A stretch of 64,000 bases of DNA from Obrimoposthia wandeli (GCA_977020255.1 CDROCS010000253.1:2976001-3040000); one strand, 5' to 3'; counted from the first letter of the stretch, positions 24,122-43,313 are shown. Program-made: numbers and translations. The notes: generated by a model from the letters alone, not told the origin.

Positions 24122-25213
24122 TTACTTAGATTCTAATAATTCACGTAATGATGTTGGTAATATATTTCGAGCTTTACTTGTAATACTTTGTTCATGTTTT
24201 TGCCAAAGAATACCTAGATAAATAACAAATAATCCAAGCAGCGTTAATGTGATGGGGAATAGCCAACTGTCTTTAAATAAATCGGATGCGAGATGACCAA
24301 TATAACCAGTACAGCCTATAGCGCCGAAAACAACAAAAACTCTTCGAACAAGTAATACACCAAAAGCGATCATGAGTAGATTTATACTGAAGTAAATAAA
24401 TTTAGATAATTCACTATCAGAATATTGAAAGGACATTCCACCCCAAAAAGCGACTACACCAAATAAATAGATCCAAAATGCATAATCAGCGTTGTTCCAA
24501 GATCTAATATCAAGCCAAAAGGCCAACGAAATCATGAGTAATCCGCTGTACATAGACACTAATGTTCTCAGCTCCCAATTATATTCGTCGGCAGAAATCA
24601 TTACTGCAATGTCCATTGTTAAATACCAGAGCGTCACAGCAATGGGCATTATTAAGAATGGATATTTGTATTTCCAAGCGATAATAACTCCTACGGCTAA
24701 AGTACTTAGCTCCATATATAACCAATGCCATTTGATATATCGATGGTAATCTCGGTAAACACTTTCATCAGGCCAAACGCCTAAAGCCTGTTGTGCTCCA
24801 TAAACAGCTAATGGCGTTAGAGCAATAACAAATGTTCCACATATTCCTGCAGGTATAGCTAAACCCTTAGCTTTAAATATATTGGTTAGTTTAAGCCCTA
24901 CAGCGCCATAAAATAATGCAATAAAAACAATCCCGACACCACCAAAAGACTCCCATCCTAAATTCATAAAAATAGTCATTGCACCTATCGCAATCATACC
25001 TCCCAAATAATAAAGAACATGAGTGAAATCAAACTTAGGCCCTGCATTGGGCTGAGTTTTAAAAAAGTGAATGAGTTTCTCAGACTGTTCAAAGGAAATA
25101 ATATTCTGCTTTACCGCATCTTCAATGTTCTTTTTAGTAAAGTTCAACCTAGACTCCTTTTTATGATGTGTGGCGAAATGAAACGCAGACGACTGTTGCG
25201 TGTTCTTATCCAT
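24122..25213 (-). CDS. Multi-TM membrane protein (DUF2157-like)
   Basis: N-terminal IIS-EQ and LYYLGGMIAIGA followed by many TM helices. Confidence 0.7.
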   Translation of the reverse strand: MDKNTQQSSAFHFATHHKKESRLNFTKKNIEDAVKQNIISFEQSEKLIHFFKTQPNAGPKFDFTHVLYYLGGMIAIGAMTIFMNLGWESFGGVGIVFIALFYGAVGLKLTNIFKAKGLAIPAGICGTFVIALTPLAVYGAQQALGVWPDESVYRDYHRYIKWHWLYMELSTLAVGVIIAWKYKYPFLIMPIAVTLWYLTMDIAVMISADEYNWELRTLVSMYSGLLMISLAFWLDIRSWNNADYAFWIYLFGVVAFWGGMSFQYSDSELSKFIYFSINLLMIAFGVLLVRRVFVVFGAIGCTGYIGHLASDLFKDSWLFPITLTLLGLFVIYLGILWQKHEQSITSKARNILPTSLRELLESK

Positions 25214-25461
25214 AGCTATTTCAGCGAAAAAACAGTGACCAAAAAATAAACTTTATAACGCATAAGTTACCACAATAAATAATGGAAACAAGTGTAAAAT
25301 CATTAAATTAGCAGGCTAAGTTAGAAAGAGTAATCATTCAAATAAGTGGCGATATATAACGCCTTACTGAATGATTTAAGATAGTAGCCTCAAATAGTAT
25401 AACCATGACTAATGGTTAATTTTATGTTTAATAAACTTGCCTTGTACCTGGCAAGGTTGAC

Positions 25462-27874: not shown

Positions 27875-28078
27875 AAAAATTCCTTAGCCTTTATTAGATG
27901 TGGGGTAATGTCACAACATGCCGTTTACTATAAAATGCGCGGTCAAGCTGTTAGCAGATCAAGTCCCGTTTTAAATTCTTGTTGAACGAAGCCGCTCTGC
28001 GGCAGAGTAGATTTAAAACAACCTTCCATACTCAATAACAGCATTGTCACTTCGATGATGCGTTATTGGAGTATACCC

Positions 28079-28966
28079 ATGAATACATCACAAGCACAAC
28101 ATTACAATTATCTTTATGAACAACACCTTATCAACCTATCCTTACAAGGTAAACGTCCTTCAACAATTGATGCTTACGCCCGTGCGGTTCGCCGTATAAC
28201 TGCCTTTTTTGATAAAGCACCTGATACCTTAACCACCGCTGACTTAAAACAATATTTCAACAGCCTCATTCAAACACATTCTTGGAGCACCATTAAGCTT
28301 GACCGTAATGGTTTACAGTTCTTTTACCGCTACACTCTCGATAAACAATGGGAGTGGCTCTCTATCGTTAAACCACCACAAGTAAAGCGCATCCCTGATA
28401 TTTTAACGGTCAAGCAAGTCAGTGATGTGATCAATCAAACCAAGCAACTTCGCTATCAAGTATTTTTTATAACGCTTTATTCTCTGGGACTGCGCTTAAG
28501 TGAAGGACTTAATTTAACCATACATGATATCGATAAATCGACAATGCTGGTACATGTTCGTGATGGTAAAGGAGGAAAAGACCGCATGGTGCCTCTGCCT
28601 GAGCAGACTCTGTTAGCGCTGAGGAATTATTGGAAAATACATCGCCACGCCCGTTTGATTTTTCCTGGCCTTCAGGTAAATACGAAAAACCATATGGATA
28701 AAGGCGGTGTTCAAAAAGCCTTAAAAAAGGTACTGCATGATTGTCGAATTAAAAAATTCATCAGCCCACATTCTCTTCGTCATTGTTATGCTACCCACCT
28801 GCTTGAACAAGGGCTTGATTTGCGTTCTTTGCAGCAATTACTTGGACACGCCAGTCTCAACACCACTGCACGTTACACACAGCTCACAAAAGTGAAACAA
28901 CGTGATATGTCACGCGCTGTAAACAAATTAACCGATAAACTCGACATTATATGGTCTATAAAATGA
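28079..28966 (+). CDS. Tyrosine recombinase (phage integrase family, N-terminal SAM-like domain), intact
   Basis: LGLRLSE (R), GKGGKDR (K), HSLRH, LGH, TARY catalytic set; no IntI-specific insertion. Confidence 0.93.
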   Translation: MNTSQAQHYNYLYEQHLINLSLQGKRPSTIDAYARAVRRITAFFDKAPDTLTTADLKQYFNSLIQTHSWSTIKLDRNGLQFFYRYTLDKQWEWLSIVKPPQVKRIPDILTVKQVSDVINQTKQLRYQVFFITLYSLGLRLSEGLNLTIHDIDKSTMLVHVRDGKGGKDRMVPLPEQTLLALRNYWKIHRHARLIFPGLQVNTKNHMDKGGVQKALKKVLHDCRIKKFISPHSLRHCYATHLLEQGLDLRSLQQLLGHASLNTTARYTQLTKVKQRDMSRAVNKLTDKLDIIWSIK

Positions 28967-30028
28967 GTACCTTTATTGAGTTACTTCGTCAACATCACCA
29001 AGCCCTTGAAATTCAGTATAGCGTGAAATTAACACCTGACATGCGTAAAGCGATTTATGCCATGCTTATGTGCAAAACACCACAGCAACGCCAATCACTT
29101 TGGGCTTGTGACCATTGCGAGCATCATGACCGTATGCCACTTTCTTGTGGCCATAGAAACTGCCCGCAGTGCCAACAAAACACAACATCACAATGGCTCG
29201 CTAGACAAAAAGCAAAACGCTTACCTGTTGAGTATTTCATGGCGACTTTTACCTTACCCTTTGAGTTAAGGCCTTTAGCTAAAAGCCGTCCTAAAGCATT
29301 ATATCAATTGATGTTTTCAGTCACATCTTCAATATTGAAAGACTTTGCCACACGCCAAGGCTTAGGCGACATTGGCTTTACCTCGGTACTACATACCCAC
29401 AGCAGAAGGCGTGAACTACATCCCCATTTACATATTATTGTGCCAAATGGCGGTTACGACTCTAAACGAAAACAATGGCGTAAAGGCAAGAAAGGCTATT
29501 TGTTTAACGAGTTCGCACTCGCTAAAGTCTGGAGAGCACGCGTGTTTGAAGCTATAAAAAAACATCCTGAGCTGTCACTGACTACTATCAAAAAACTGCC
29601 AACAAAATGGGTGGTCGATTGCAAAAAAATAGGTCATGGCTTACCGGCGTTAAAATATCTGTCTCGGTATTTATATCGTGGGGTATTGCCCGATAAAGAC
29701 ATTATTCATTATGACCAACACAACGTCACCTTTCGTTATAAAGACAGTGCAAATTCCAAACAAAAATAACACCCCCGTACGTTGCCAACACTCAAATTCT
29801 ACGCTGATACTGCAACATGTTTTGCCCAAAGGCTTGCAGCGGGTACGTGATTATGGGCTGTTATCCTCAGGCGCTAAAAAGCTTAGGTTAATAATTCAAT
29901 TGCTGTTATTACCCATTCACGACTGGCTTAAACCCAAAAAGGAAGAAACCACACCCACGCGGGCCACGAGAATATGCCCTTGCTGCAAGCATAAAATGCA
30001 TTGCACGGGAGTGACACGAACGCCCTAG
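28963..30028 (+). pseudogene. IS91-family HUH/Y2 transposase, frameshifted near 29755-29805
   Basis: CDHC/SCGHRNCPQC zinc finger, HPHLH, YLSRY; split into two ORFs relative to copy 2. Confidence 0.85.
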
Positions 30029-30244
30029 CCGAAAGGCGAATACAATAAGGATAATGGCTAAGGTAAGTAATTAATCTAGGGGGGAATAAAGAAAGGCAAC
30101 ATGGTTCGCTAAAACATAAACTGATGAAAAAGCATTGCCTTTTTGTCTAATCTCGTGTAATGTCTTAAGATTATCTGGCAATTGATAGCAAAGCCCCTTC
30201 AAGAAAGAAATCGCTATTTCCTATATAAAGCAGACATCGGGCTT

Positions 30245-30301
30245 GTCCAACACCCGAATAAGGTGTTTAGCCGCCGTTAGCCTATTCTTGGTTTGTTATG
30301 T
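30245..30301 (+). other. attC-like terminal hairpin carried by element copy 1
   Basis: GTCCAAC accc gaataagg...cctattc ttggttt GTT. Confidence 0.6.
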
Positions 30302-30542
30302 GCTTCTGGATTTATTGACCAAATACATGATTAGCTGACGCTAAAGGTTAACAAATCTATAAACCTGAAACAACCACAACCCGCCTAACTATCGCACCAA
30401 CTTTAATTTGAGCCAATGAATGAAAAACTAATAGATTTTTACTCAATACCAATGGCGAAAACTGGAAGGCAACAAATACAAATTTGATGATACACGCCTT
30501 ACTTTTAGCAAAAATCACCTAAGGAAGAAGGCGGCACATAAC
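30296..30542. other. Non-coding cassette, family A (copy 1)
   Basis: Complementary ends GTTATGTGC/GCACATAAC, no ORF of 60 aa or more, TTTGAGCC...GGCGAAAACTG motif. Confidence 0.75.
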
Positions 30543-30611
30543 CTTGGGTAAAAGTTGCTAAGGGCACGTTTGGAACAAACTGTACGTGTCAAATTATTGC
30601 CGTTGTTATGT
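30536..30611 (-). repeat. Degenerate, shortened attC
   Basis: ACATAAC...aaactgtacgtgtc...GTTATGT. Confidence 0.55.
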
Positions 30612-30639
30612 TACCACCACTGAAATTAAGGAAATATAT

Positions 30640-30864
30640 ATGAATGAATTTGATGAAGTATTACCAGTATTAACAAGTGACCAAGTTTTTGTTTGTGAAG
30701 ACGGTTGCGGGGATTGTAGAGCTATTGAGTTTGATTTTTGTTACAGCCGGTCTGAAAATACAAATACTGGAGAAGTTACAGAACTCACGCATAAAGCTTA
30801 CAAGTCTAGCTGTTGCGGTGCAAAAGTTAACGTTTGGGATGAGTCGATAGAAGACTTGGTTTAG
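30640..30864 (+). CDS. 74-aa Cys-rich protein, antisense to the array inside a cassette
   Basis: RBS AAGGA; CEDGCGDC...SSCCG; cassette ends GTTATGTTA/TAACATAAC. Confidence 0.7.
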   Translation: MNEFDEVLPVLTSDQVFVCEDGCGDCRAIEFDFCYSRSENTNTGEVTELTHKAYKSSCCGAKVNVWDESIEDLV

Positions 30865-30866
30865 TA

Positions 30867-30967
30867 ACATAACGCCCCATTAAGAGGCAAATAATTGTTG
30901 GCTAAAATAAGCGACGAAGGAGCAAATAGCCAACTGTTATTTGTCCTGCTTGAATGGCTTGTTATAT
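30867..30967 (-). repeat. attC
   Basis: ACATAAC gcccc attaagaggcaaa...gttggct...agccaact...tttgtcctgcttgaat ggctt GTTATAT. Confidence 0.92.
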
Positions 30968-30969
30968 TT

Positions 30970-31544
30970 TTATTTAAACCGGGAAGGATCAATTAATTTG
31001 ATTTCTGTCATTCGGTTGAAAATTTTTGAATACTTGTGCCATTCATCAGTTGGACTACCAGCAACAGTAATTCCGACAGAGTCTTTTTCATTATCCCAGA
31101 GCAGTGAATGTAAAATTGTGAAATTTATTGGAATACCATTCCTCATTTGCACTTGTGTCACTTCTATACATGTGCGAATAAAGTCCCCAATTCTATTTGT
31201 ACCACAACGTTTGATTAGAGCTGATGTTTTTATTATGTGTTCAATATATCCTTGAACATACTCTTCCGGCGTTAACTCTGTCCCCTTATATATCCCCATC
31301 ATAAATTGAATAGATAAACCTGTTTCATATCCATTAATTGGATCTTCTTTAGATATTATCCAATTTAGAGAATTAGCAGCCTTGTGCCTTTCCGCATAAA
31401 ACCAACTTTTGGGTTTTGGAACTTCGCCACCAGTAGGTTCTAAAATCTGTTTTACAAATTCGACTGGCTGGTTTTTTGTATTATTTTCTGTAGACGCGCA
31501 TGAATGACCAAACTAAATAAGTACATTAGTAAAAATATTTTCAT
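30970..31544 (-). pseudogene. Putative lipoprotein, one frameshift near the lipobox
   Basis: MKIFLLMYLFSLVI, then a shifted frame SCASTENN that runs in frame into ORF 30970-31302. Confidence 0.6.
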
Positions 31545-31575
31545 AATTTTAATTGACTCAATAGATAATTTAAAA

Positions 31576-31667
31576 ATATAACGCCTTGCTAAGGGGAAAA
31601 TTATGGTTGGCTATAATGCGCGAAGCGCAGCCAACTGTAATTTTTCCGTTTGAGCAACTTGTTATAT
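31576..31667 (-). repeat. attC
   Basis: ATATAAC...GTTATAT with gttggct/agccaac arms. Confidence 0.92.
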
Positions 31668-31895
31668 GCAACGCTGGTAAAACCAAGCTTTGCACGAATT
31701 TAAGAAGCCCGTAATATATAACCTAACCGTGAACTTTTACGCTACACGCGAAAGGTTGAACAAAATTAATAGCGTTGCCACCTTTGAAAAAGGTAAAAGA
31801 GGCAATGCTTATTAATGCTGACGCGAACCAGTTTTAGCGAAAAACTATTAACTAGAAAGCACTTTATTTAAAGCTAATTTTTAATAGCATATAAC
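31662..31895. other. Non-coding cassette, family B (copy 1)
   Basis: Bounded by GTTATATGC/GCATATAAC; 102-bp core identical to 38924-39025. Confidence 0.8.
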
Positions 31896-31985
31896 GCCCC
31901 AATAAGAGGCTAAAAATTGTTGGCTAAAATAGCGAGGCACGAGCACGGCCAACTGTTTTTAGTCCTTTTGATTGCCTTGTTAGTT
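31889..31985 (-). repeat. attC
   Basis: ATATAAC...GTTAGTT. Confidence 0.92.
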
Positions 31986-32276
31986 GCTTTGGACTTGGGG
32001 TGCCACAACAGAAGCTAATAAGTTACCATGCGTTTACTTTACAGTTTGACTCAAAAAGCATCTCCGCACTACACAATCAAACATGAATTTTGAGCCTTAA
32101 AAACTAAAGCTAATTGAATCATTAAACTGAGTAAGGCGAAAACTGGGGAGGGCAAAAAGGAAGATACTATTTGAAGGCACTTCCATTGCCAAACCAAAGA
32201 TTGAACCAAACGCAAAAAACTAAGTTAAGAACCAAACTAGCAAATAAATTTAACTAATTTAGAGCGGACAACTAAC
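31980..32276. other. Non-coding cassette, family A (copy 2)
   Basis: Ends GTTAGTTG/CAACTAAC; no ORF of 60 aa or more; shared motif. Confidence 0.78.
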
Positions 32277-32370
32277 GCCCTCGTTAATGGGCAAATGATA
32301 GTTGGTTAAAATAAGCGACGCAGGAGCAAAAACCAACTGTAATTTGTCCTGATTTAACAGCTTGTTATAT
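32270..32370 (-). repeat. attC
   Basis: AACTAAC...GTTATAT. Confidence 0.92.
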
Positions 32371-32628
32371 TTATTTATGACTTGCGTCATTAATGTGTTT
32401 TTTTACAGCCTCAACTTGTGCATCACATTGCCTTTTACTGTCACCAGACATCTCAGAGCACTTTTGAGATGAACCTCCGCTATTTGTTGCAGCATCAGTA
32501 GCAGCCGCTAAAGCTAAACAGACAGGCGTCGCTGAGCCACAATTTGCAGCTTTATCGTAGTTTGGGCTCGAGCTGCAACCGCTTAGCACTATAGAAATTA
32601 ATGCAGTGAGTAATTTGATAAATGACAT
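32371..32628 (-). CDS. Small lipoprotein cassette
   Basis: Signal peptide with LSGC lipobox; four further Cys. Confidence 0.75.
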   Translation of the reverse strand: MSFIKLLTALISIVLSGCSSSPNYDKAANCGSATPVCLALAAATDAATNSGGSSQKCSEMSGDSKRQCDAQVEAVKKHINDASHK

Positions 32629-32646
32629 ATCCGTATACACCTATAA

Positions 32647-32745
32647 ATATAACGCCCACATTAACGGGCTAAGTAATAGTTGGCTAAAATAGCGAAGAAT
32701 GAGCACGGCCAACTGTTGCGTGTCACGTTGATTTACTTGTTATAT
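32647..32745 (-). repeat. attC
   Basis: ATATAAC...GTTATAT. Confidence 0.9.
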
Positions 32746-32749
32746 GCAA

Positions 32750-32965
32750 TTAGTTATTACAAGCACAAGCTAGTTTTCCATTACTTTGATGCCACTCTTG
32801 ATAATTACCACTAGAACAATTACGCCTAACATCAGGACAACTTGCACCAACGTAACTAATTTCGGTATCAGTAGCTTTTTCAAACGCTGATTCGGCAATG
32901 GCTCCTACGAGAGAAGAACAACCTGAAAGTAGAACAAGTATAAATGTGACGGGTAGGTATTTCAT
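32750..32965 (-). CDS. Small lipoprotein cassette
   Basis: LLSGC lipobox; C-terminal Cys cluster. Confidence 0.75.
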   Translation of the reverse strand: MKYLPVTFILVLLSGCSSLVGAIAESAFEKATDTEISYVGASCPDVRRNCSSGNYQEWHQSNGKLACACNN

Positions 32966-32979
32966 GCGTGATCCTTATT

Positions 32980-33084
32980 GGCTAACGCCCTGCTTTAAGG
33001 CAAATTCAGGTTGGCTAAATGTGAAGTGGAGCGGAATCCGCCAATCGTAGTTTCGCTGGTCCCAATTTGAACAGCTTGTTGAAC
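32980..33084 (-). repeat. attC whose R'' box is interrupted by IS91-like copy 2
   Basis: GGCTAAC gccct...ttgaacagcttG|TTGAAC. Confidence 0.8.
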
Positions 33085-33171
33085 GCCGCTCTGCGCAGAG
33101 TGATTTAAAATGAATCTCCATACTCAATAACAGCACATTATCACTTCGATGATGCGTTATTGAGTATACCC

Positions 33172-34003
33172 ATGAATACATCACAAGCACAACATTTACA
33201 TAATTATCTTTTATGAACAACACCTTATCAACCTTATCCTTACAAGTAAACGTCCTTCAACAATTGATGTTCTTAACCACCGCTGACTTAAAACAATATT
33301 TTCAACAGCCCTTTTATTCATTATTCTTGAGCACCATTAAGCTTGACCGTAATGGATTGCAGTTCTTTTACCGCTATACACTCAATAAGCAATGGGAATG
33401 GCTCGCTATCGTTAAACCACCGCTGCAAAGCGCATCCCCTGATATTTTAACGGTCAAGCAAGTCACAAGTGAGGTAATTAATCAAACCAAGCAACTGCTA
33501 TCAAGTATTTTTTATAACGCTTATTCTCTGGGACTGCGCTTTAAGTGAAGGGCTTAATTTAACCCTACATGATATTGATAAATCGACAAGCGCGGCATGC
33601 CTCGTGATGAAAGCAGTGAAAAAGACCGCATGGTGCCTCAAGTTGCCTGAGCAGACTCCTGTTAGCGCTGAGGAATTATTGAAAATACACGCCATGCCTG
33701 TTTGATTTTTCCTTACTTTCAGGTAAATACGAAAACCATATGGATAAAGGCAGTGCTCAAAAAGCCTTAAAGGTACTGCATGATTGTCGACCAAAAATCC
33801 AAGCACATTCTTCTTGTCATTGTTATGCTACCCACCTGCTTGAACAAGCGCTTGATTTGCGTTCTTGCGGGTAAATTACTTGGACACGCCAGTTCAACAC
33901 CACTGCATCGTTACACCACAGTCACAAAGTGAAACAACGTGATATGTCACGCGCCGTAAACGACTTAACAGATAAACTCGACATTACATGGACTGTAAAA
34001 TGA
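33172..34003 (+). pseudogene. Tyrosine recombinase with many frameshifts
   Basis: Colinear with 28079-28966 but with numerous indels (possibly assembly error). Confidence 0.8.
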
Positions 34004-35067
34004 GTACCTTTATCGATTTACTACGTCAACATCATCAAGCCCTTGAAACTCAGTATAGCGCTAAATTAACACAAGACATGCGTAAAGCGATTTATGCCAT
34101 GCTTAGGTGCAAAACACCACAGCAACGCCAATCACTTTGGGCTTGTGACCATTGTGAACATCATGACCGTATGCCACTTTCTTGTGGTCATCGAAACTGC
34201 CCACAGTGCCAACAAAACACCACCTCACAATGGCTAGCTAGGCAAAAAGCAAAGCGCTTACCTGTTGAGTATTTCATGGTGACCTTCACCTTACCCTTCT
34301 CTTTTGAGTTAAGGCCTTTAGCTAAAAGCCGTCCTAAAGCATTATATCAATTGATGTTTTCAGTCACATCTTCAATATTGAAAGACTTTGCCACACGCCA
34401 AGGCTTAGGCGACATTGGCTTTACCTCGGTACTACATACCCACAGCAGAAGGCGTGAACTACATCCCCATTTACATATTATTGTGCCAAATGGCGGTTAC
34501 GACTCTAAACGAAAACAATGGCGTAAAGGCAAGAAAGGCTATTTGTTTAACGAGTTCGCACTCGCTAAAGTCTGGAGAGCACGCGTGTTTGAAGCTATAA
34601 AAAAACATCCTGAGCTGTCACTGACTACTATCAAAAAACTGCCAACAAAATGGGTGGTCGATTGCAAAAAAATAGGTCATGGCTTACCGGCGTTAAAATA
34701 TCTGTCTCGGTATTTATATCGTGGGGTATTGCCCGATAAAGACATTATTCATTATGACCAACACAACGTCACCTTTCGTTATAAAGACAGTGCAACGAAC
34801 AAAATAACACCCCGTACGTTGCCAACACTCAAATTCTTAATGCTGATACTGCAACATGTTTTGCCCAAAGGATTGCAGCGGGTACGTGATTATGGGCTGT
34901 TATCCTCAGGCGCTAAAAAGCTTAGGTTAATAATTCAATTGCTGTTATTACCCATTCACGACTGGCTTAAACCCAAAAAGGAAGAAACCACACCCACGCG
35001 GGCCACGAGAATATGCCCTTGCTGCAAGCATAAAATGCATTGCACGGGAGTGACACGAACGCCCTAG
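34000..35067 (+). CDS. IS91-family HUH/Y2 transposase, open frame
   Basis: Zinc finger, HPHLH, YLSRY, RVRDYG, C-terminal CPCC. Confidence 0.92.
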   Translation: MSTFIDLLRQHHQALETQYSAKLTQDMRKAIYAMLRCKTPQQRQSLWACDHCEHHDRMPLSCGHRNCPQCQQNTTSQWLARQKAKRLPVEYFMVTFTLPFSFELRPLAKSRPKALYQLMFSVTSSILKDFATRQGLGDIGFTSVLHTHSRRRELHPHLHIIVPNGGYDSKRKQWRKGKKGYLFNEFALAKVWRARVFEAIKKHPELSLTTIKKLPTKWVVDCKKIGHGLPALKYLSRYLYRGVLPDKDIIHYDQHNVTFRYKDSATNKITPRTLPTLKFLMLILQHVLPKGLQRVRDYGLLSSGAKKLRLIIQLLLLPIHDWLKPKKEETTPTRATRICPCCKHKMHCTGVTRTP

Positions 35068-35277
35068 CCGAAAGGCGAATACAATAAGGATAATGGCTAA
35101 GGTAAGTAATTAATCTAGGGGGGAATAAAGAAAGGCAACATGGTTCGCTAAAACATAAACTGATGAAAAAGCATTGCCTTTTTCGTCTTAACTTCGTACG
35201 TCTTGCGATCTGGCAATTGATAGCAAGCCCTTCAAAAAACAAATCGCTATTTACTATATAAAGCAGACTACGGGCTT

Positions 35278-35332
35278 GTCCAACACCCGAATAAGGTGTC
35301 GGCTACGCGACACCTATTCTTATTTGTTATAA
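35278..35332 (+). other. attC-like terminal hairpin carried by element copy 2
   Basis: GTCCAAC accc GAATA(A)GGTGTCG gctacg CGACACCTATTC ttattt GTTATAA. Confidence 0.65.
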
Positions 35333-35662
35333 GGTATTTTCACCAGGTCGATAATCATAGTTTTTTCGCTCTTCAACCGATATTACATTCTCAACCATTT
35401 TCGATTCGGAAGCACCATACTTTTGGAAGTTTTCTCGACCTTCTATGATAGATAAACCATGATTAGCACCAGAAGGTTCATCTAATTCCCAACCTGTGCC
35501 TTCATCTTCCCAAAAGCAAATTGGACAAATTAAATAGTTTCCGCTTTCAGCAATACTTATGTATTCACAACATTCGCATTTAACTCTAGGTGTAAGATCA
35601 TCAGGAGAATACCAAATAAGCTTACGCTTAAATAAATTGCGGATTATGCTGAACATCGTCAT
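35327..35662 (-). CDS. CPCC-family cysteine-rich protein cassette
   Basis: CECC...ICPICFWED...SGANHGLS-EGRENF. Confidence 0.85.
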   Translation of the reverse strand: MTMFSIIRNLFKRKLIWYSPDDLTPRVKCECCEYISIAESGNYLICPICFWEDEGTGWELDEPSGANHGLSIIEGRENFQKYGASESKMVENVISVEERKNYDYRPGENTL

Positions 35663-35672
35663 ACCTTATAAC

Positions 35673-37561
35673 GAGGCTGTAGAATTACTCGTTTTTATAT
35701 TATTTTTAATCGTAATACTCTAACTGGATTATTTTCTGTTAACAATCAAAAACGTTTACGTTTTTGGCGATTTTTATTTTTACATCGTTGATAGTTTAAT
35801 AATGATTAGTTTTTACTTGTTTTGTCTTTGAGGTTACTTAGTGGGGGAAACAAGGGGTTTCTCCCCTTAGTGCAGGTTATTTCTTAACTTTTCTATATTA
35901 TGCACTAAACAATACATTTGCCATTGGCTATTTACTTTTTCTTGTCCGCGCAAGGTGAATTTATTCATGCCTTTATTCACCGTGATGTGCCAAACAATGG
36001 CTCGATTGTGCCTAATCGCTTACTGTATTGTCAAATGTCGTCCAGCGCTACTGGTTCATTTTTATCTTCATTTTGTCAGTGTAACTGTGATGACATTATC
36101 TGAGCTGGCAGTCGTTAAAAACTGCACCTGACGCCCTGTTTTGGTCGGCTTTACGCATGCATTGTTGAAATGCAGTAGCAGACCTTACAGTCTTTAAATA
36201 GCCGGTGAAACGGGTGTAACTTTTTCCAGCAACATTGATGATATGATTACCTTGTAGCTACATGTCCTGCTCCGGCTGGGCAACGGCAGGCAGGTTTCAG
36301 TGTCTTTATCAAAGTAAAAATCATCTCGACTAAATTGTTTAGGTTTATCTTTTTACTGCGCTTCTTTAATCGTGCCGTTTTTTCTTTTTTCTGTTGCATA
36401 GTTTCACTTATTTGAAACAGCGGGTTACGACTCTCTAAAAAGCATTATCAGCCATAACCAGTCATCAAGCCTTATAGTTTGCCATATACGCTAAATTAAC
36501 TTCACTATGAAAACCACTGTCGGCGGTAAACTTGGCTGTGGAAAAGGTATCGGGGGTGCCAAGATTATTGAGTTGTTGCTTGAGTTGCTCTACCGCGGGT
36601 TTTAATGTTTGTTGCTCGCCAACACTGCCCCAGGTTTGGGCTTGAAGAATGACTTGGTGTTTATCATCGTTAATTGCAATACCGTTGTAGCCTTGAATGG
36701 TACCTTTACTGGTGGTCATTTTAGCGCTGTCAGGGTCGGTAATATTACTCTTAATTGGCTTGCCTTGGCTACCCCGCTTATCTTCATTGTTAGTGAGGAA
36801 TTCTTTATTTCTTTATCGCGCTATTATCGAGTTTGGGCTTGTGCTTTAGGTCATGTTCTAGTTCATCTTGATTCAAGGCATCTTGGGCTTGATGCATAGC
36901 TAAAATTCGTTGACTGGCTCGACGCAGTTTCGCTTCTTTACGAGTGAGCTCTTCAATGGTGCCGCTCCATTCTTTACTGGCATTTGACTTGATTTTACAG
37001 CCATCGATTGAAAACATCTGCCGACCAATCAAACCTTCTTTATCACATATCATCATCAAGATTTGGGTGAACAGTGGGTTCTATTTGGTCTTTTCATACG
37101 GGCAACAAACAGGCGATAGCCGTAAAATGGGGTTGTACGTCACCCGATAAACTCATGAAGGTAATGTTAGTTTCACAGGCATTCGCAATACGACGACTAG
37201 TGATATACCCGCGAGAGTAGGCAAATAATATGATTTTTAACATCACGGCTGGAGAATAGGCGGCTGCGCCGCCTTTGTCATTATTGAACCACGCATCAAA
37301 CCCTGACAAATCAAGGTGATTATCAATAATATGCGCGAGCGCATATTCAAACGTACTATAACACTTGAACTGAAAATCAATGGGAATGAACTTACTTTGA
37401 CAGGATAAATCGGGTTTGTAGTTCGCCATAAGGTTTTACGGTGGGGGAATAATATCTATTAGATCACAGAAAAGATCGGGATTCAAGCTTAAAAATCGAC
37501 CTATTAACAAAATATAAAAAAAGACATAAAAACGTCTTTTTTGGAGAAATTCTACAGCCTC
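35673..37561 (-). mobile_element. IS1182-type insertion sequence inside an attC R' box
   Basis: 14-bp terminal IRs GAGGCTGTAGAATT / AATTCTACAGCCTC, flanked by duplicated AAC. Confidence 0.85.
35867..37429 (-). pseudogene. IS1182-family transposase, heavily frameshifted
   Basis: AYSPAVMLKIILFAY-TSRRIA-C, DGCKIKSNASK, IEPLFG...YCLVHNIEKL fragments. Confidence 0.82.
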
Positions 37562-37655
37562 AACGCCACGTTAAGCGGCAAAAAATTGTTGGCTAAAATT
37601 GTGAACGGAGTGAAACAGCCAACTGTTTTTTGTCCGTTTGAACGCCTTGTTAGGT
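37562..37655 (-). repeat. attC (R' box at 35666-35672 separated by the IS)
   Basis: AAC gccac gttaagcggcaaaa...tttgtccgtttgaac gcctt GTTAGGT. Confidence 0.88.
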
Positions 37656-37994
37656 TTAAGACCAGATTAGGTCACCGTAACCCCATATGATTGTGCCCGT
37701 AACCAGTAATATATGAGCCGCAAACGAAACATTGCGCCTTGGTTTAGTTGGTTTTGCTTTAAGCGGAATAGACATATTTATTTTTGATTGCATAAATTGA
37801 GCTCGTTGGATGTCTTCGTAAATGTGTGATGAGACCTTAAACTCAACAAGTGCAGCCAAAAGAACAACTACAGAACCTGAACGAGCAAACCAATTATAAT
37901 CAGTTGAATAGTAATCTGCGATTACAGAGATAACAGCAACTAATATAGCTACTCCAATAAGAGACCATTCAATCGTATACTTCCGACGCTTCAT
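37656..37994 (-). CDS. Hypothetical membrane protein cassette
   Basis: 112 aa, ~3 TM segments, bounded by attC sites. Confidence 0.75.
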   Translation of the reverse strand: MKRRKYTIEWSLIGVAILVAVISVIADYYSTDYNWFARSGSVVVLLAALVEFKVSSHIYEDIQRAQFMQSKINMSIPLKAKPTKPRRNVSFAAHILLVTGTIIWGYGDLIWS

Positions 37995-38004
37995 ATATAA
38001 GGAA

Positions 38005-38107
38005 ACCTAACGCCCAATTAACAGGCAAAAAATGGTTGGCTAAAATAAGTGAACGTAGTGAACAAAAAGCCAACTGTTTTTTGTCCTTGTTGAATTGCTT
38101 GTTAGGT
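38005..38107 (-). repeat. attC
   Basis: ACCTAAC...GTTAGGT. Confidence 0.93.
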
Positions 38108-38110
38108 GAA

Positions 38111-38422
38111 TTATATCGCCAAACTAGCAGCTAGATTGTGTAACGGGCTTACCAACATTACAAGAGATATTAAAAATGCGATTAATAGCCCACATTGTTT
38201 TTTAATTTTGGAATCTTTTTTAACAATTAGGTAAAGCGATATAACTATTGAGACTAAAACTACAAATATAAAACAATAACCTAATAATAACTCGATGATA
38301 TCTGAAATACCGTAAGGGTCATTTGGAGCTTTATACATTGAGCTATAAAAGAAATAACGAAATGAAGGCATTAACATAAAAAATATAAGATTAAGCCACA
38401 CCAATATTTTAATGATTCGCAT
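38111..38422 (-). CDS. Hypothetical membrane protein cassette
   Basis: 103 aa, ~3 TM segments. Confidence 0.75.
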   Translation of the reverse strand: MRIIKILVWLNLIFFMLMPSFRYFFYSSMYKAPNDPYGISDIIELLLGYCFIFVVLVSIVISLYLIVKKDSKIKKQCGLLIAFLISLVMLVSPLHNLAASLAI

Positions 38423-38443
38423 CCTGCTGACTCTTCCTTATTC

Positions 38444-38542
38444 ACCTAACGCCCTCGTTAAGGGGCAAAATTTAGTTGGCTAAAATGTTGAGGGACGAAA
38501 ACAGCCAACTGTATTTTGTCCTTCTTTAACAGCTTGTTATAT
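38444..38542 (-). repeat. attC
   Basis: ACCTAAC...GTTATAT. Confidence 0.93.
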
Positions 38543-38545
38543 GAA

Positions 38546-38743
38546 TTATGATTTATTAGGCTCATTGTCATTGGTTGGGTTGCCAGAAGGAAGCTTTATT
38601 AATATTTCAGATAAGCTTGCTGCGATTTTAGCCTGTGATATTGCAATATCTTTGTTAGATTGAACTAAACCGTAGAACCAGTAAATGACAAATATAGTTA
38701 AGATAAAGCCTAATATAGGGAATAACATTGTAAATAATAACAT
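38546..38743 (-). CDS. Small single-TM protein cassette
   Basis: 65 aa, hydrophobic N-terminus, RBS GGAG. Confidence 0.65.
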   Translation of the reverse strand: MLLFTMLFPILGFILTIFVIYWFYGLVQSNKDIAISQAKIAASLSEILIKLPSGNPTNDNEPNKS

Positions 38744-38777
38744 GATATAAAACTCCTTTTTTGATTATGATACTTTC

Positions 38778-38869
38778 ATATAACGCTTTGCTAAGGGGCA
38801 AATGACCGTTGGCTATAATGCGCGAAGCGCAGCCGACTGTTATTTGTCCGTTTGAGCAACTTGTTATAT
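38778..38869 (-). repeat. attC (near-identical to 31576-31667)
   Basis: ATATAAC...GTTATAT. Confidence 0.93.
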
Positions 38870-39099
38870 GCAGCGGTGGTTGTAGCCAAACACTGCACGA
38901 ACTTAAGTCACCCGTAATATAAAAACCTAACCGTGAACTTTTACGCTACACGCGAAAGGTTGAACAAAATTAATAGCGTTGCCACCTTTGAAAAAGGTAA
39001 AAGAGGCAATGCTTATTAATGCTGATGCAATCTAGTTTTAGCGAAAAACTATGCACTAGAAAGCACTTTATCTAAAGCTAATTTTTAATAGCATATAAC
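38864..39099. other. Non-coding cassette, family B (copy 2)
   Basis: Homologous to 31662-31895. Confidence 0.8.
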
Positions 39100-39190
39100 G
39101 CCCTGTTAAGGGGCAAATTGTAGTTGGCTATAATGTGAGCGGAGCGAAACAGCCAACTGTACTTTGTCCCGCTTGAACAGCTTGTTATAT
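39093..39190 (-). repeat. attC
   Basis: ATATAAC gccct GTTAAGG...GCTTGAAC agctt GTTATAT; extra bases on the minus-strand R''-L'' arm. Confidence 0.95.
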
Positions 39191-39195
39191 GCTGC

Positions 39196-39567
39196 TTACT
39201 CTTCTACTAAACCTTGCTTTTTGAGTTCAGAGTTAATTGAACCACTTGTACGCCCAAACTCACCAGCAAGAACCGAGACTAATTTACCACTTTTAAATTG
39301 CTCTGCCACATCATTTTTTTGCTCTTCAGTCCAAGGTAAACCAGCATTTTCAGGTAAACCACTTTCAAGGTTTTCTGCTTGCTTTTGCTCGATAGTTTTT
39401 TTGACTTTAGCTTGCTTTTTAGGGGGATGTTTTATTAAGTCCAATGTAGCAAATAAAGCTCTGATAATTTCAGGACTATTGTAAGGGGATTCTTCAGGTA
39501 AAACTTCACCTGTTAGTGGATTTATACCATTAGCTAAAGCTTCAATAATTTTTAAGTTTGCATCCAT
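39196..39567 (-). CDS. Hypothetical protein with C-terminal HTH/Myb-like motif
   Basis: ALANGINPLTGEVL...PWTEEQ...LAGEFGRTSGSI-SEL-K-GL. Confidence 0.75.
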   Translation of the reverse strand: MDANLKIIEALANGINPLTGEVLPEESPYNSPEIIRALFATLDLIKHPPKKQAKVKKTIEQKQAENLESGLPENAGLPWTEEQKNDVAEQFKSGKLVSVLAGEFGRTSGSINSELKKQGLVEE

Positions 39568-39600
39568 ACTATTTTAAAACCCATGATCTGAAAAGTTATT

Positions 39601-39696
39601 ATATAACGCAATAAGCGGTGGAAAATTACTGTTACAAATGTTTGAGGAACGAAAAACAGCCAACTGTAAATTTTCCGTTTAATTGCCTTGTTAGGG
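39601..39696 (-). repeat. attC
   Basis: ATATAAC...GTTAGGG. Confidence 0.88.
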
Positions 39697-40232
39697 TTAC
39701 TTACCAACCGTAGCAACTAAGTCCCCATTTTGTTTTCTAGTGAATGTTGAGCTACTCGGGTAGTCCCTACCAACAATTCGAAATATGTTTAATATTACTT
39801 TTAGAGGTACAAAGTACACTTTTTGATTTTTTTGCCGATCAGTAGAAACATATACACCTTCTAGTTTGCCATCACCTGAAACAACGAAAACATAGCTATG
39901 AACAAATTACAGATAAAACCCGAATATCTCTTCTTTGTTCTTCGGTTATGAGATTTAAAGTTAAACTCATAGTTTTCATCTATAAAAGCATGATTTAACC
40001 AATTAACTCTTTTTGTGTTTTTATACCACTGGATATCAAATTTAATTTTTTTCGTGGAGTCGGATATTTTAATAGTTTCAATCAATTTCCTGACAGAGTA
40101 AAAGACCAACATCAGCTCTTTTTCTAGCTTAACATAAGTACTTTCTCGAGTATTTTCGCTAAGCCTTAGTCCACTTAACCAATCTTGCAGATTTCAAAGC
40201 GGTTCTTTCCAATAGTGAGACTCGTAAATCAT
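39697..40232 (-). pseudogene. Frameshifted hypothetical cassette gene (MIYESHYWKEP...)
   Basis: ATG 40232 and TAA 39697 fill the cassette; track ORF 39861-40112 is the middle fragment. Confidence 0.6.
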
Positions 40233-40243
40233 ACTTGCGGTAA

Positions 40244-40343
40244 CCCTAACGCCCTGTTAATGGGCAAAATATTGTTGGCTAGAATAAGCGACGAAGGAGC
40301 AAAAGCCAACTGTATTTTGTCCTTGTTAAACAGCTTGTTAGTT
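40244..40343 (-). repeat. attC
   Basis: CCCTAAC...GTTAGTT. Confidence 0.93.
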
Positions 40344-40683
40344 GCCAAACAACACAAAACTAATTATTGAATATAAAACAAAGGCAATAACGGCAAAAAA
40401 TATAATAAAGATATCACTCTTATTTAGCCACAGAATTGCTAGCCAAAAATTTGTATTAAAACCGGCTAACTCACGTTTATCAATGTTAAGTAATTTGGTC
40501 GATGAGTTAATACTAAAAAATGCTGAAATGATGAACATAGGTGCGATTCCTGTTCCCCAAAAAAGGAAACCTGCGGGACTAGCCATAATCTCAGTAATGA
40601 ATAAAGTATTCAGTAATAGCGCTATTGCTCCTAAACTACAGCAAGTATTTGAGAAATTTTCACCACTATCCCTTTTATAAATC
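40338..40683 (-). pseudogene. Membrane protein cassette with 5' end/R' box apparently deleted
   Basis: Track start at 40706 lies inside the next attC; expected AACTAAC core absent. Confidence 0.5.
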
Positions 40684-40787
40684 TCAATCGCCTCGTTAAG
40701 AGGCAAATAATATGTTGGCTAAAATAAGCGACGAAGGAGTAAACAGCCAAATCAAAGCGGCTTCGTCCTTTGAACGACTTGCTATGG
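40684..40787 (-). repeat. Degenerate attC (both R boxes damaged)
   Basis: gttaagaggcaaa...gttggct...cagccaa...ttgaacgactt GCTATGG. Confidence 0.75.
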
Positions 40788-40819
40788 CTGATACTTGACT
40801 TCCTACCGCATCAAAGTTT

Positions 40820-41272
40820 TCAACGTTGGCCATTAATTTTACAACCTAAATAAATAACCACTTCACGAGCACCTGCACCCATTGCTAACTCACGTAAAAC
40901 TCTTTCCTCTATGTCTGTCAGCCCACCATCAGTTTTTTCTAATTGGTGAACGATGACTCTAGGTGATGGTCTAATTTTTGAATTGTGCATCGTATAAATA
41001 CCATGCTGCAATATTTTCTCTGCACACATAAAGTCTGCGACAAAAGACCTGTTATGTTTAAAAGGGTTTAGAATTCTAATGTTTGGAGCAGATAGGGATT
41101 TAGCATTTTTTCCGATTGCTTTTATGACTTCCCCTTTTTTAGTGTTTTCTATAGCAATATAAGGCTCTTCTTCAAATAACATATCTGAAGAAAAAGCTTT
41201 AATTGAAACTTTATTTTCGCTTAATTCGAAAAGCAAATCATTGGAGAAAAGGCTTCTAATGAATGTGAACAA
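40820..41272 (-). CDS. Short MreB/actin-like (YjaA-like) cassette protein
   Basis: NPFKH-DF-AE-IL and EKTDGGLTDIEERVLRELAMGAGAREV; TTG start behind GGAGG. Confidence 0.65.
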   Translation of the reverse strand: MFTFIRSLFSNDLLFELSENKVSIKAFSSDMLFEEEPYIAIENTKKGEVIKAIGKNAKSLSAPNIRILNPFKHNRSFVADFMCAEKILQHGIYTMHNSKIRPSPRVIVHQLEKTDGGLTDIEERVLRELAMGAGAREVVIYLGCKINGQR

Positions 41273-41292
41273 TACTCTCGGCCTCCGAGCTA

Positions 41293-41392
41293 CTTTAACG
41301 TTTTCGCAATAAGCGGAAATTAATGTTGGCTGTATTGCCGAGGAAACCAAAACAGCCAACTGTAATTTTTCCGTTTAATTGCCTTGTTATAA
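41293..41392 (-). repeat. attC
   Basis: CTTTAAC...gttggct/agccaact...GTTATAA. Confidence 0.85.
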
Positions 41393-41817
41393 CTCTTTTA
41401 TTAAACAATATGTTGTATGACCTTTTGGATAATCAGGTAATTCACCAAATACTTTGTAACCTAGCTTTTCATTAAAAAGGCTTTGCTTGGAAGCTCAGTG
41501 TTTCCGTGCGCATGTACTCCAAACCCTTTTATCTTTAAAGCAATTTTTTCAGCTGCTTCCATTAAATTACTACCGAGCCCTAAACCTCTCGTTTCTTTAG
41601 ATAACCAAAGCAGTTCAATAGTACAGTAGTTCCAGAATGCATTTGCTCTAATACCTCCTAGAACTTTTCCATTTTCATCTTTGGCAAGGACAGCAAATTT
41701 GGTGTCTTTTTCAAAGCCAACGTCATCCGGTAGATAGTCTTTATTATAGGAGCCAATACCGACACTTAATGCCTTAAGATCTTCCTGAGTAGGTGAAGTT
41801 GTTACTACGAGATTCAT
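41387..41817 (-). pseudogene. GNAT acetyltransferase, frameshifted (second cassette)
   Basis: Colinear with 23637-24062 with small insertions near 41500-41550. Confidence 0.75.
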
Positions 41818-41838
41818 ATATACCGACATCCGACAGAG

Positions 41839-41933
41839 TTATAACGCTTATATTAAGCGGCTAAGTACAATTTGCTATAATGCGCGGAGCGCGAGCAAAC
41901 TGTACGTGTCCGACTTGAATTATCTTGTTATTT
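41839..41933 (-). repeat. attC of the first cassette
   Basis: TTATAAC...GTTATTT. Confidence 0.85.
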
Positions 41934-42223
41934 GATGGTAGCGGAAAACTACTAACGATAACAAGAACTTTACTGGTTTTGGCAGCCCGACCGTAGAACT
42001 AAAAAGTGCCCAGCGCCACGACTAACCAAACAGTGATTTTTGAGCCAAAAACGAAAGCTCGTTTAGTTAATGGCTTTACGACAATAATGTCTAAAATAGT
42101 AAAGTCTATTAGCGGCTATAACTAAACCGATCAGGCGAAAACTGAGGCGTAACCCACCAAAATAATTTGGGGAATACCGCTTTTACAAATAAAACTTTAG
42201 CTGATTTCGTGGTGCCAAATAAC
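41928..42223. other. Non-coding cassette, family A (copy 3), first position in the array
   Basis: GTTATTT / AAATAAC complementary ends; no ORF of 60 aa or more; shared motif. Confidence 0.78.
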
Positions 42224-42408: not shown

Positions 42409-42424
42409 CTGTATGGGTGTACAG
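42409..42424 (+). promoter_or_regulatory. LexA (SOS) box upstream of intI
   Basis: CTGTatgggtgtACAG = CTGT-N8-ACAG, 16 bp before ATG 42441. Confidence 0.85.
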
Positions 42425-42440
42425 TTACCTTGAGGTTTTT

Positions 42441-43200
42441 ATGTCTTCTCCTTTTTTGCAGCACATTACGGAACAAATGCGTTTAAAACGTTATGCTAAA
42501 AGAACGATAGAAAGCTATGTCTATTGGATAAAGGCGTTTATAAACTTTAATGGCCAGCGTCATCCAATAAAATGTCATGATGTGGGAGTTGAAAATTTTC
42601 TTTCTCATTTAACAAACAAACTTAATGTCGCACCTAGAACCCAAGGTGTGGCATTAAATGCTTTAGTCTTCTTGTATAGAGGGATCCTGTTAAAGCCCTT
42701 AACGCTTGAGCTTAACTTCAATAAGTCTAAGCAGGTTACTAAGTTACCTGTCGTGTTAACCCAAGAAGAGGTAATTGCGTTACGTTTAATGGAGGTTGTT
42801 CGCTTAAGAGTACAGGACATTGATTTTGACTTTCATGCTATTCAAGTGTGGCAAGGGAAGGGCGGTAAAAATCGGCGTGTTACCTTAGTAAAGGAGTTGT
42901 GCGAGTCGTTTAAGTGAAGATCCCGAAACAGGTTTTGTTCGTCGACATCATATTGATGAAACAACATTAAGAAAATCAGTGAAAATGGCTGCATGCAATG
43001 CAGAGATAGAAAAAAATGTGACTTGTCATACGTTAAGGCATTCATTTGCCAACATTTATTGCAACGAGGGGCCGATATAAGAACCAGTACGCGAGGGAAC
43101 GAATTAAAGTCATACTGATATTCGTACTACGCAAATATACACTCATGTCATTGAACAGGGTGCGAATGGTGTTCGCAGCCCATTATCAGATTTACTCTAA
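42441..43200 (+). pseudogene. intI: Integron integrase, with internal deletions and frameshifts
   Basis: MRLKRYAKRTIESY-WI, LRLME-LRVQDIDF, GKGGKNR, DPETG-RRHH, CHTLRHSFA, TTQIYTHV, GVRSPL; 760 bp, most of the IntI-specific insertion missing. Confidence 0.9.
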
Positions 43201-43313
43201 AGTAGGCACTTTGAGAATAATAAAACCGCGCGATACAGCGCGATTTTATTTAAAAAAGGGGGTGTAAAGTCGTTAATACAAAGTGTTTAACACCTTGCAT
43301 TAACAAACCTCAA

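Follow-up and report, generated by a model that had tools for sequence, protein, structure and literature searches.

Background

Cassettes without a gene make up 6-49% of Vibrio arrays, and conserved paralogous non-coding cassettes were described there in 2006 (Boucher et al. 2006, PMC1382264); promoters in such cassettes came to light in 2024 (Blanco et al., PMC11014356). As far as the available text of these two reports goes, such cassettes lack an open reading frame (ORF), are bounded by attC sites, are highly paralogous, are conserved from end to end in related species and are confined to one bacterial group; the roles proposed for them are those of a selfish element, a promoter or a regulatory RNA, and secondary structure or structured RNA receives no mention in that text. 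What gene-less cassettes do has been a question since 2006, to which promoters are only a partial answer. Here we analyse a 64,000-nt stretch of DNA from the assembly of Obrimoposthia wandeli (GCA_977020255.1 CDROCS010000253.1:2976001-3040000, the whole of which is referred to as the window), in which three ORF-less integron cassettes, c1 (30295-30542), c2 (31979-32276) and c3 (41927-42223), belong to a family that we call family A.

Family A shares with the Vibrio gene-less cassettes all of the features listed above. It differs from them in its hosts, which are Colwellia and relatives, in the absence of any sequence relation that we could see, and in having a covariation-supported fold, an invariant tandem G-A motif on the antisense strand and no detectable conserved promoter. 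The other close system is the attC site itself, with which family A has in common the integron context, the bottom strand, a layout of helix, spacer, helix and variable tip, and the question of whether RNA or single-stranded DNA (ssDNA) is the folded molecule; the DUF1874 and Transposase-resistance motifs are related to attC sites (Weinberg et al. 2017, PMC5737381). Unlike an attC site, family A lies between attC sites, has a multi-helix domain of ~200 nt and is flanked by attC sites that are normal and separate. In the available text of the literature we found no description of family A or of a covariation-supported fold in integron cassettes. By sequence comparison, family A is a large and previously undescribed family of whole ORF-less cassettes of Colwellia-like marine bacteria, and it would most likely represent a structured RNA made from the antisense strand of the cassette, a reading to which we give a probability of roughly 0.4.

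A family of gene-less cassettes with a shared motif

The original prediction for this window drew attention to two short sequences, TTTGAGCC (at 30407, 32089 and 42039) and GGCGAAAACTG (at 30454, 32135 and 42134), and on rechecking all six occurrences are exact and on the plus strand. The three cassettes that carry them had been called otherwise dissimilar, which is wrong, as c1, c2 and c3, although divergent, are homologous, form one family and have the same architecture. Taken singly, neither half of the motif is rarer than chance in the 64-kb window (25 of 100 and 14 of 100 shuffles reach the observed count); the pairing of both halves lies far beyond chance, as judged from a metagenome scan for the bipartite pattern.

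More than 200 copies of family A are present in marine metagenomes and in genomes of Colwellia, Thalassotalea, Litorilituus and Pseudocolwellia. On metagenome contigs there are at least 120 loci with the bipartite pattern, and among the 148 matches listed the two halves are most often 38-40 nt apart, with a sharp peak of 72 matches at these gap lengths. Several of these contigs have 2-4 copies each, including one with four in 2 kb (Ga0209081_1037526, 2047 nt), on which three cassettes are adjacent at a spacing of ~385 nt, so that runs of one gene-less cassette do occur in nature. A scan of one genome per species likewise gave at least 120 loci, and 66 of the 120 listed are true family members by nhmmer. 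Among the matches listed, the true members with titles shown are nearly all from Colwellia, with some from Thalassotalea, Litorilituus and Pseudocolwellia, the outliers being one Shewanella isolate contig and three contigs of metagenome-assembled genomes from other or unassigned taxa, one of them labelled Aliivibrio. A covariance model of the motif region (R1) had matches in at least 11 of 121 sampled genomes of the GTDB family. Viral contigs gave five pattern matches, of which the two with family-like motif spacing lacked the flanking features of the family, the other three being uninspected.

Conservation extends over the whole cassette: 67 copies can be aligned between an R' box, which is mostly GTTAGTTG, and the R'' box CAACTAAC, over 295-305 nt and with the motif ~107-109 nt from the start; for the family as a whole the length between attC boxes is about 285-305 nt. 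We distinguish subfamilies A1 (the commonest, including c2), A2a, A2b, A3, A4, A5 (including c3) and the c1 type. The motif is retained even between subfamilies that have little else in common in sequence and differ in the type of their attC, A4 being found in a genome with a different attC type, and the copies within one genome are old and divergent. As is expected of integron cassettes, attC repeats flank every family-A copy and a fragment of an integron integrase gene (intI) is present at 42417-42917.

That the three cassettes are ORF-less, as originally predicted, agrees with our finding no ORF common to them on either strand. Nor is any ORF conserved on either strand across the family, no protein database search having been made on the short frames, and the longest stop-free frames of 139 members have a median of 51 amino acids versus 53 in shuffled sequences. 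A small conserved peptide was considered (QFSP on the minus strand in two of three copies, and an ATG-led frame in some A1 copies) and rejected, as neither the frames nor the stops are conserved. Rfam 15 gave no match at the gathering score in the whole window and, when E values up to 10 were admitted, still none in c1, c2 or c3.

Predicted fold of the cassette

The fold predicted for family A is closed by a long-range helix (P1) of 8-10 bp, in which a segment 15-30 nt upstream of the motif pairs with a segment just before the R'' box, ~200 nt apart. Against controls of 300 column shuffles, which ignore phylogeny and are not tree-aware, P1 covaries within subfamilies (30 both-sided cells versus 6.5 shuffled, and 7 versus 1.3, 0/300 in both cases), as does a small hairpin, P5 (27 cells versus 10.2 and 18 versus 6.0, 0/300 each). 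The strands of P1 differ between subfamilies yet are complementary in every one of them: CCGCACUA/UAGUGCGG, CCGCAACUU/AAGUUGCGG, GCACAACUU/AAGUUGUGC, CCACCACUA/UAGUGGUGG, CGCCACGA/UCGUGGUG, CCGCCU/AGGCGG in c1 and GCGCCACGA/UCGUGGUGC in c3. This complementarity was read directly from the strands, as a self-versus-cross test with RNAduplex in wide windows was too noisy (diagonal mean -14.5 versus off-diagonal -13.0).

In the shared layout P1 closes a ~200-nt domain that has within it the hairpin formed by the motif (P2), with a variable tip. After GAAAAC-CUG come hairpins P3/P4, which are well paired and conserved without covariation, and whose 3' strand in A1 is part of a nearly invariant ~33-nt block, the most conserved of that subfamily. 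Compensatory base pairs, the mark of a structured non-coding RNA, are found in P1 and P5, and P2 is invariant and uninformative in this respect. The original prediction overlooked that the motif is one part of a larger predicted fold closed by a covarying long-range helix. RNAalifold run on a mixed-subfamily or long A1 alignment returned a poor consensus, with the pairings CUUUG-UAAAG and GGCGA-UUGCC failing across subfamilies.

For the motif itself a helix UUU-GA-GCC/GGC-GA-AAA had been proposed, and RNAalifold returns exactly this pairing unaided from an alignment of 46 sequences (A1, A2a, A2b and c1), with UUU..GCC/GGC..AAA as the base helix of P2 around a GA/GA loop. Of 128 covariance-model matches that extend over the whole motif, 123 have it without any change, and the six Watson-Crick pairs of P2 are 99.7% canonical over 129 model matches (126 distinct rows). 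The same 129 matches have 0 both-sided changes in the six pairs, because the motif is near-invariant, and what supports the predicted P2 helix is conservation, not covariation. The earlier claim of a conserved fold therefore stands for the near-invariant motif and for the covarying P1 and P5, and falls short for covariation in the motif helix; protein binding by the motif was pure inference.

Natural variants are consistent with the predicted hairpin. One copy has TTTTAGCC with GGCTAAAAC, a double change by which both G-A pairs become U-A/A-U and eight contiguous Watson-Crick pairs result. The fourth pair of P2 varies yet stays paired (U-A in A1, G-C in two A4 copies), and by reading of the alignment the inner helix of A2b (UUUGCUAA with UUAGCAAA and variants) changes compensatorily. 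The tip is variable in sequence and takes insertions of 45-50 nt: the interior of P2 measures 36-41 nt in 123 copies, five others having 83-88 nt. Variation is thus confined to the tip, as in genuine hairpins. A tip length that is either tightly held or changed by a discrete insertion resembles that of RNA arms and would speak for an RNA.

All elements of the fold in the three cassettes of the window lie on the plus strand. In c1 (GTTATGTG at R' to CACATAAC at R''; R1 55 bits, E 3.5e-11) the 5' strand of P1 is read from the sequence as CCGCCT (30381-30386), in the same position as the covarying P1 of other subfamilies, and would pair with AGGCGG (30529-30534) directly before the R'' box; its P2 (30407-30464; sequence and R1), TTT-GA-GCC(A)...(T)GGC-GA-AAA followed by CTG, has a 39-nt interior. 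In c2 (GTTAGTTGC to CAACTAAC; R1 85.5 bits, E 7e-19) subfamily covariation places P1 at 32064-32071 (CCGCACTA) and 32260-32267 (TAGAGCGG) with one A-A mismatch, and P2 (32089-32145; RNAalifold and R1), TTT-GA-GCCTTA...TAAGGC-GA-AAA followed by CTG, has a 38-nt interior and is followed by the long hairpin P3/P4 (32146-32195; GGCAA..GGAAG / CTTCC..TTGCC), with 93% and 90% canonical pairs and no covariation. For c3 (R1 27 bits, E 5e-4) there are two paralogues, at G000:C253:3522400 and 3526243, and one homologue (L261) from a different genome; sequence and paralogues suggest a P1 of GCGCCACGA (42013-42021) with TCGTGGTGC (42207-42215, read from the sequence), including one G-U, and paralogue comparison suggests a P2 (42039-42144) whose 87-nt interior has an inserted 14-bp helix (42066-42079 with 42099-42113).

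This last helix bears on the helix extensions claimed for the enclosed sequences, which stood as GCCA/TGGC in c1, GCCTTA/TAAGGC in c2 and the inner CTTTAC/GTAAAG in c3. The outer extension of c3, GTTTAGTTA/TAACTAAAC, did not: it overlaps and competes with the 14-bp helix, which contains CTTTAC/GTAAAG, and in two close c3 paralogues the 14-bp helix is kept perfectly and the outer helix is broken.

The evidence from the fold makes it very improbable that family A consists of functionless relics or hitch-hikers kept similar by gene conversion, with the motif as their slowest-decaying piece. Gene conversion among paralogous non-coding cassettes has indeed been proposed (PMC1382264, in its available text), many copies have unpaired A-C changes, and truncated copies and remnants exist (at the L003 locus described below, and at 25222-25360 in the window). 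Such decay is disfavoured because P1 and P5 have compensatory changes, and it is at odds with a motif that is invariant across subfamilies which elsewhere are only ~50-65% identical and which differ in genus and in attC type, as well as with the conserved lengths of the cassette and of the P2 arm.

Several known motifs were compared with P2 and rejected. The kink-turn likewise has two consecutive G-A/A-G pairs between Watson-Crick helices, but it requires a 3-nt bulge on one strand, 5' of the G-A pairs; P2 is a symmetric 2x2 loop in which UUU/AAA and GCC/GGC pair directly in 128 of 128 spanning matches, and in the absence of a bulge it is not a kink-turn. The core of the hammerhead (CUGANGA and GAAA around three stems), in which tandem sheared G-A pairs extend stem II, is locally similar in its order of GA, hairpin, GAAA and second hairpin at a three-way junction; family A is not a hammerhead ribozyme because the CUGA box is missing, the 5' box UGAAYUUUGA is without CUGA-N-GA spacing, and there is no Rfam match at E up to 10. 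Mimicry of attC can be set aside in that the P2 boxes are not R/L boxes (GTTRRRY/RYYYAAC) and that the real attC sites lie on either side of the element. Domain V of group II introns was rejected for want of a defining feature.

A second duplicated ORF-less cassette of the window, family B (31662-31890 and 38866-39099; 92% identical, with a long stable hairpin), shares CCGTGAACTTTTACGC and GCGAAAAACT with the family-A junction (CCGTGAACTTTT.. and ..GCGAAAAACT, at 31727-31742 and 31836-31846). If CGC/GCG replaces GCC/GGC, its helix would be a P2 with two compensated pairs. Family B goes undetected by model R1, and relatives of family B appear in two metatranscriptome assemblies.

Strand of the motif

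The plus strand, on which the motif lies, is the bottom (antisense) strand of the cassettes, a fact overlooked in the original prediction and supported by two independent lines, the position and direction of intI and the co-inheritance of the left attC. Since intI is on the plus strand at the right end of the array, the cassettes run leftward and their sense strand is the minus strand, on which nearly all cassette ORFs of the array are found. In 380 copy pairs the identity of the left attC rises with that of the body (0.77, 0.82 and 0.84), and that of the right attC is flat at 0.71 throughout; as a cassette reads body then attC on the minus strand, the left attC is the one that belongs to the family-A cassette. 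For c2 this is the attC at 31888-31985 (plus strand), assigned by the same tracking of body identity.

A separate question is which strand folds. As the original prediction held, the tandem G-A pairs exist on the plus strand only, the minus strand giving U-C/C-U mismatches in their place. P1 of A1 has 17 G-U cells and 0 A-C when read on the plus strand, P1 of A4b and A5 has one fixed G-U, and six one-sided departures in P2 pairs comprise four of transition type, all G-U on the plus strand with 0 A-C, and two that are non-standard. The 14-bp helix of c3 has two G-U pairs where its paralogues have G-C/C-G. The evidence that the plus strand is the folded one is thus good but not airtight, because G-U and A-C are about equal over all predicted helices and A-C dominates P3/P4; as a strand marker, the count over all helices is ambiguous overall and clear only for P1 and P2.

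A signal in the sense strand or the duplex, such as a promoter or a terminator/insulator for neighbouring cassettes with the motif as a part of it, appears improbable on these grounds, as the minus strand would lose the G-A pairs and turn the G-U pairs of P1 and P2 into A-C. Gene-less cassettes of Vibrionaceae do carry sense and antisense promoters that in-silico prediction misses (Blanco et al. 2024, PMC11014356, in its available text), the excess of A-C over G-U variants in P3/P4 suits a sense-strand signal, and every subfamily has a minus-strand hairpin followed at once by UUUU, for example P3 and then the U-tract GUUUUC. Further, the most conserved block of A1 (32164-32192 in c2, minus strand) has a -35-like TTGGCA with a 17-nt spacer on the sense strand, and the minus strand of c2 has one 9/12 sigma-70-like match. 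The -10 is however unconserved, most members have no promoter-like site in common at one position, whichever strand is read, the U-tract is just 4-5 U, and neither a promoter nor a terminator explains the helix P1, which covaries over a range of 200 nt, or the covarying hairpin P5. The same A1 block has the GG-N10-GC spacing of a sigma-54-like site on the minus strand, with -10/-12 parts unconserved across subfamilies; this fits two subfamilies only (A1/A2a) and was rejected, being absent in A2b and A3.

Nature of the folded strand

In the reading that we favour, the functional product would be a folded single strand from the bottom (antisense) strand, most likely RNA, in which P1 closes a multi-helix domain and P2, with an invariant base and a free tip, sits at its junction. 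Next to P2 would come a hairpin that begins with the CUG behind GAAAAC, then linkers that are A-rich and conserved, and P5. The transcript may start at promoters that are weak or non-canonical, or it may stem from antisense transcription, which is known to occur in cassette arrays; the invariant G-A junction may form a tertiary or protein contact, and the RNA may act on the expression of the array or integrase or on cassette maintenance.

Against an RNA weigh the nearly equal numbers of G-U and A-C over all helices, with A-C dominant in P3/P4, the 0 both-sided changes in the P2 base, and the weak thermodynamic folding z-scores of single copies (-1.8 to +0.7 on the plus strand). To these must be added that most members have no sigma-70-like promoter in a common place, on one strand or the other, and that the plus strand of cassette bodies has no intrinsic terminator. 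Four metatranscriptome runs, used as assemblies only, yielded mostly attC sequence; one 151-nt contig, from a single library, overlaps the motif-proximal 3' half of c2 and a second covers the left attC and the first ~50 nt of the c2 body, strand information being absent from both. Finally, it is the very strand predicted to fold that integrons handle in single-stranded form, and this speaks for a DNA fold instead.

Such an ssDNA fold is the main alternative, to which we give somewhat less weight than to an RNA. Recombination in integrons acts on attC sites through their folded bottom strand, and on that same strand P1 and the inner hairpins would compact the ~300-nt body and draw the flanking attC hairpins together, raising the excision and re-insertion of a selfish cassette, and the invariant G-A motif would serve to contact a protein. 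DNA, too, forms G-T wobbles, as well as tandem G-A pairs of the sheared type where the context is 5'-Y-GA-R. In all copies the motif is on the bottom strand, and a DNA fold needs no promoter, none having been found. In composition (A 0.39, T 0.25, C 0.19, G 0.17) the motif strand is A- and C-rich, which fits the unpaired regions of structured RNAs and also the attC bottom strands of chromosomal integrons, which are reported to have the same bias (Loot et al., PMC5371416); the frequency of excision is moreover reported to drop with attC distance when bottom strands are on the lagging-strand template (PMC5371416). High paralogy with 2-4 adjacent copies fits the selfish-element option for Vibrio non-coding cassettes (PMC1382264, in its available text). 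On the other side, compaction needs pairing only, and not invariant unpaired nucleotides or a P2 arm of fixed length across attC types, the copies within a genome are old and divergent and not recent bursts, and the integron literature examined describes, in its available text, no functional ssDNA fold beyond attC hairpins. Comparative analysis cannot separate RNA from ssDNA motifs (Weinberg et al. 2017, PMC5737381), nor do the present data tell the two apart.

If a structured RNA is made, the antisense transcription that it would need could come from the attC sites. Those with the R' box GTTATAT have at their 3' ends a promoter-like site (30941-30968 and 32344-32371, plus strand; TTGTCC, 16 nt with TG, TATATT), which points rightward, antisense to the cassettes and towards intI.

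The cassette array and its surroundings

Although the assembly is that of a eukaryote and comprises 1.35 Gb, the DNA of the window is bacterial, on a contig of 4.68 Mb, and therefore derives from a symbiont or contaminant genome, the host bacterium being, judging by the relatives of family A, a Colwellia-like gammaproteobacterium. A chromosomal integron array with attC repeats of 100-120 nt occupies ~25.2 kb to 42.2 kb of the window. At its right end the intI fragment (42417-42917, plus strand) has Pfam SAM-like and catalytic domains and matches TIGR02249 (E 1.4e-50) over positions 1-109 of the 315-position model, N-terminally and roughly the first third; the frame that follows it, 43046-43267, has no family match. 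The array is, from this sequence, probably no longer served by an integrase of its own. As for c3, it does adjoin attI, in keeping with the first position ascribed to it; that it is the most recently integrated cassette cannot be asserted, because all that is left of intI is the N-terminal part.

Two copies of an element (27981-30270 and ~33200-35330), 87-100% identical over repeated blocks, interrupt the array, each encoding a tyrosine recombinase (Phage_integrase and SAM-like domains) and then an IS91-type transposase (Zn_Tnp_IS91, Y2_Tnp). The first copy abuts c1, the left attC of which is interrupted by this IS91-like element ending near 30270.

The host chromosome has at least eight family-A members, namely c1, c2, c3, a truncated copy at 3.658 Mb, three copies between 3.518 and 3.526 Mb, and what remains of another at the array's far end. 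This remnant (25222-25360, plus strand; nhmmer 25193-25308, E 1e-5) is a 3' half with ..GCGAAAAAAC.. and GTTACCAC that ends in ATATAAC. The other copies, including the two close c3 paralogues, are in further arrays ~0.5 and 0.65 Mb from the window (G000:C253:3517650-3526600, loci L268-L270, and G000:C253:3656511-3659564, locus L003), the L003 copy being truncated by a deletion into an attC.

Conclusions

Family A offers a testable object among gene-less cassettes, with more than 200 natural variants, a covarying closing helix, an invariant tandem G-A motif of 8+9 nt and a known strand. Natural mutants are also at hand, in the copy that changes GA/GA to UA/UA and in the tip insertions. Should the product be an RNA, it would be a new class of bacterial non-coding RNA tied to integrons; should it be ssDNA, it would be a rare case of a complex functional DNA fold, and cassette content could tune integron recombination. 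We also consider, tentatively and as a rather doubtful proposition, that the cassette may encode no product and itself be a working part of the integron, its bottom-strand fold (ssDNA or a cis-acting antisense RNA) being bound at the G-A junction by the integrase or a host factor and controlling the excision, insertion or expression of itself or its neighbours. If so, family A would be a cassette-borne element for recombination or array regulation, and the first complex functional fold of integrons beyond attC.

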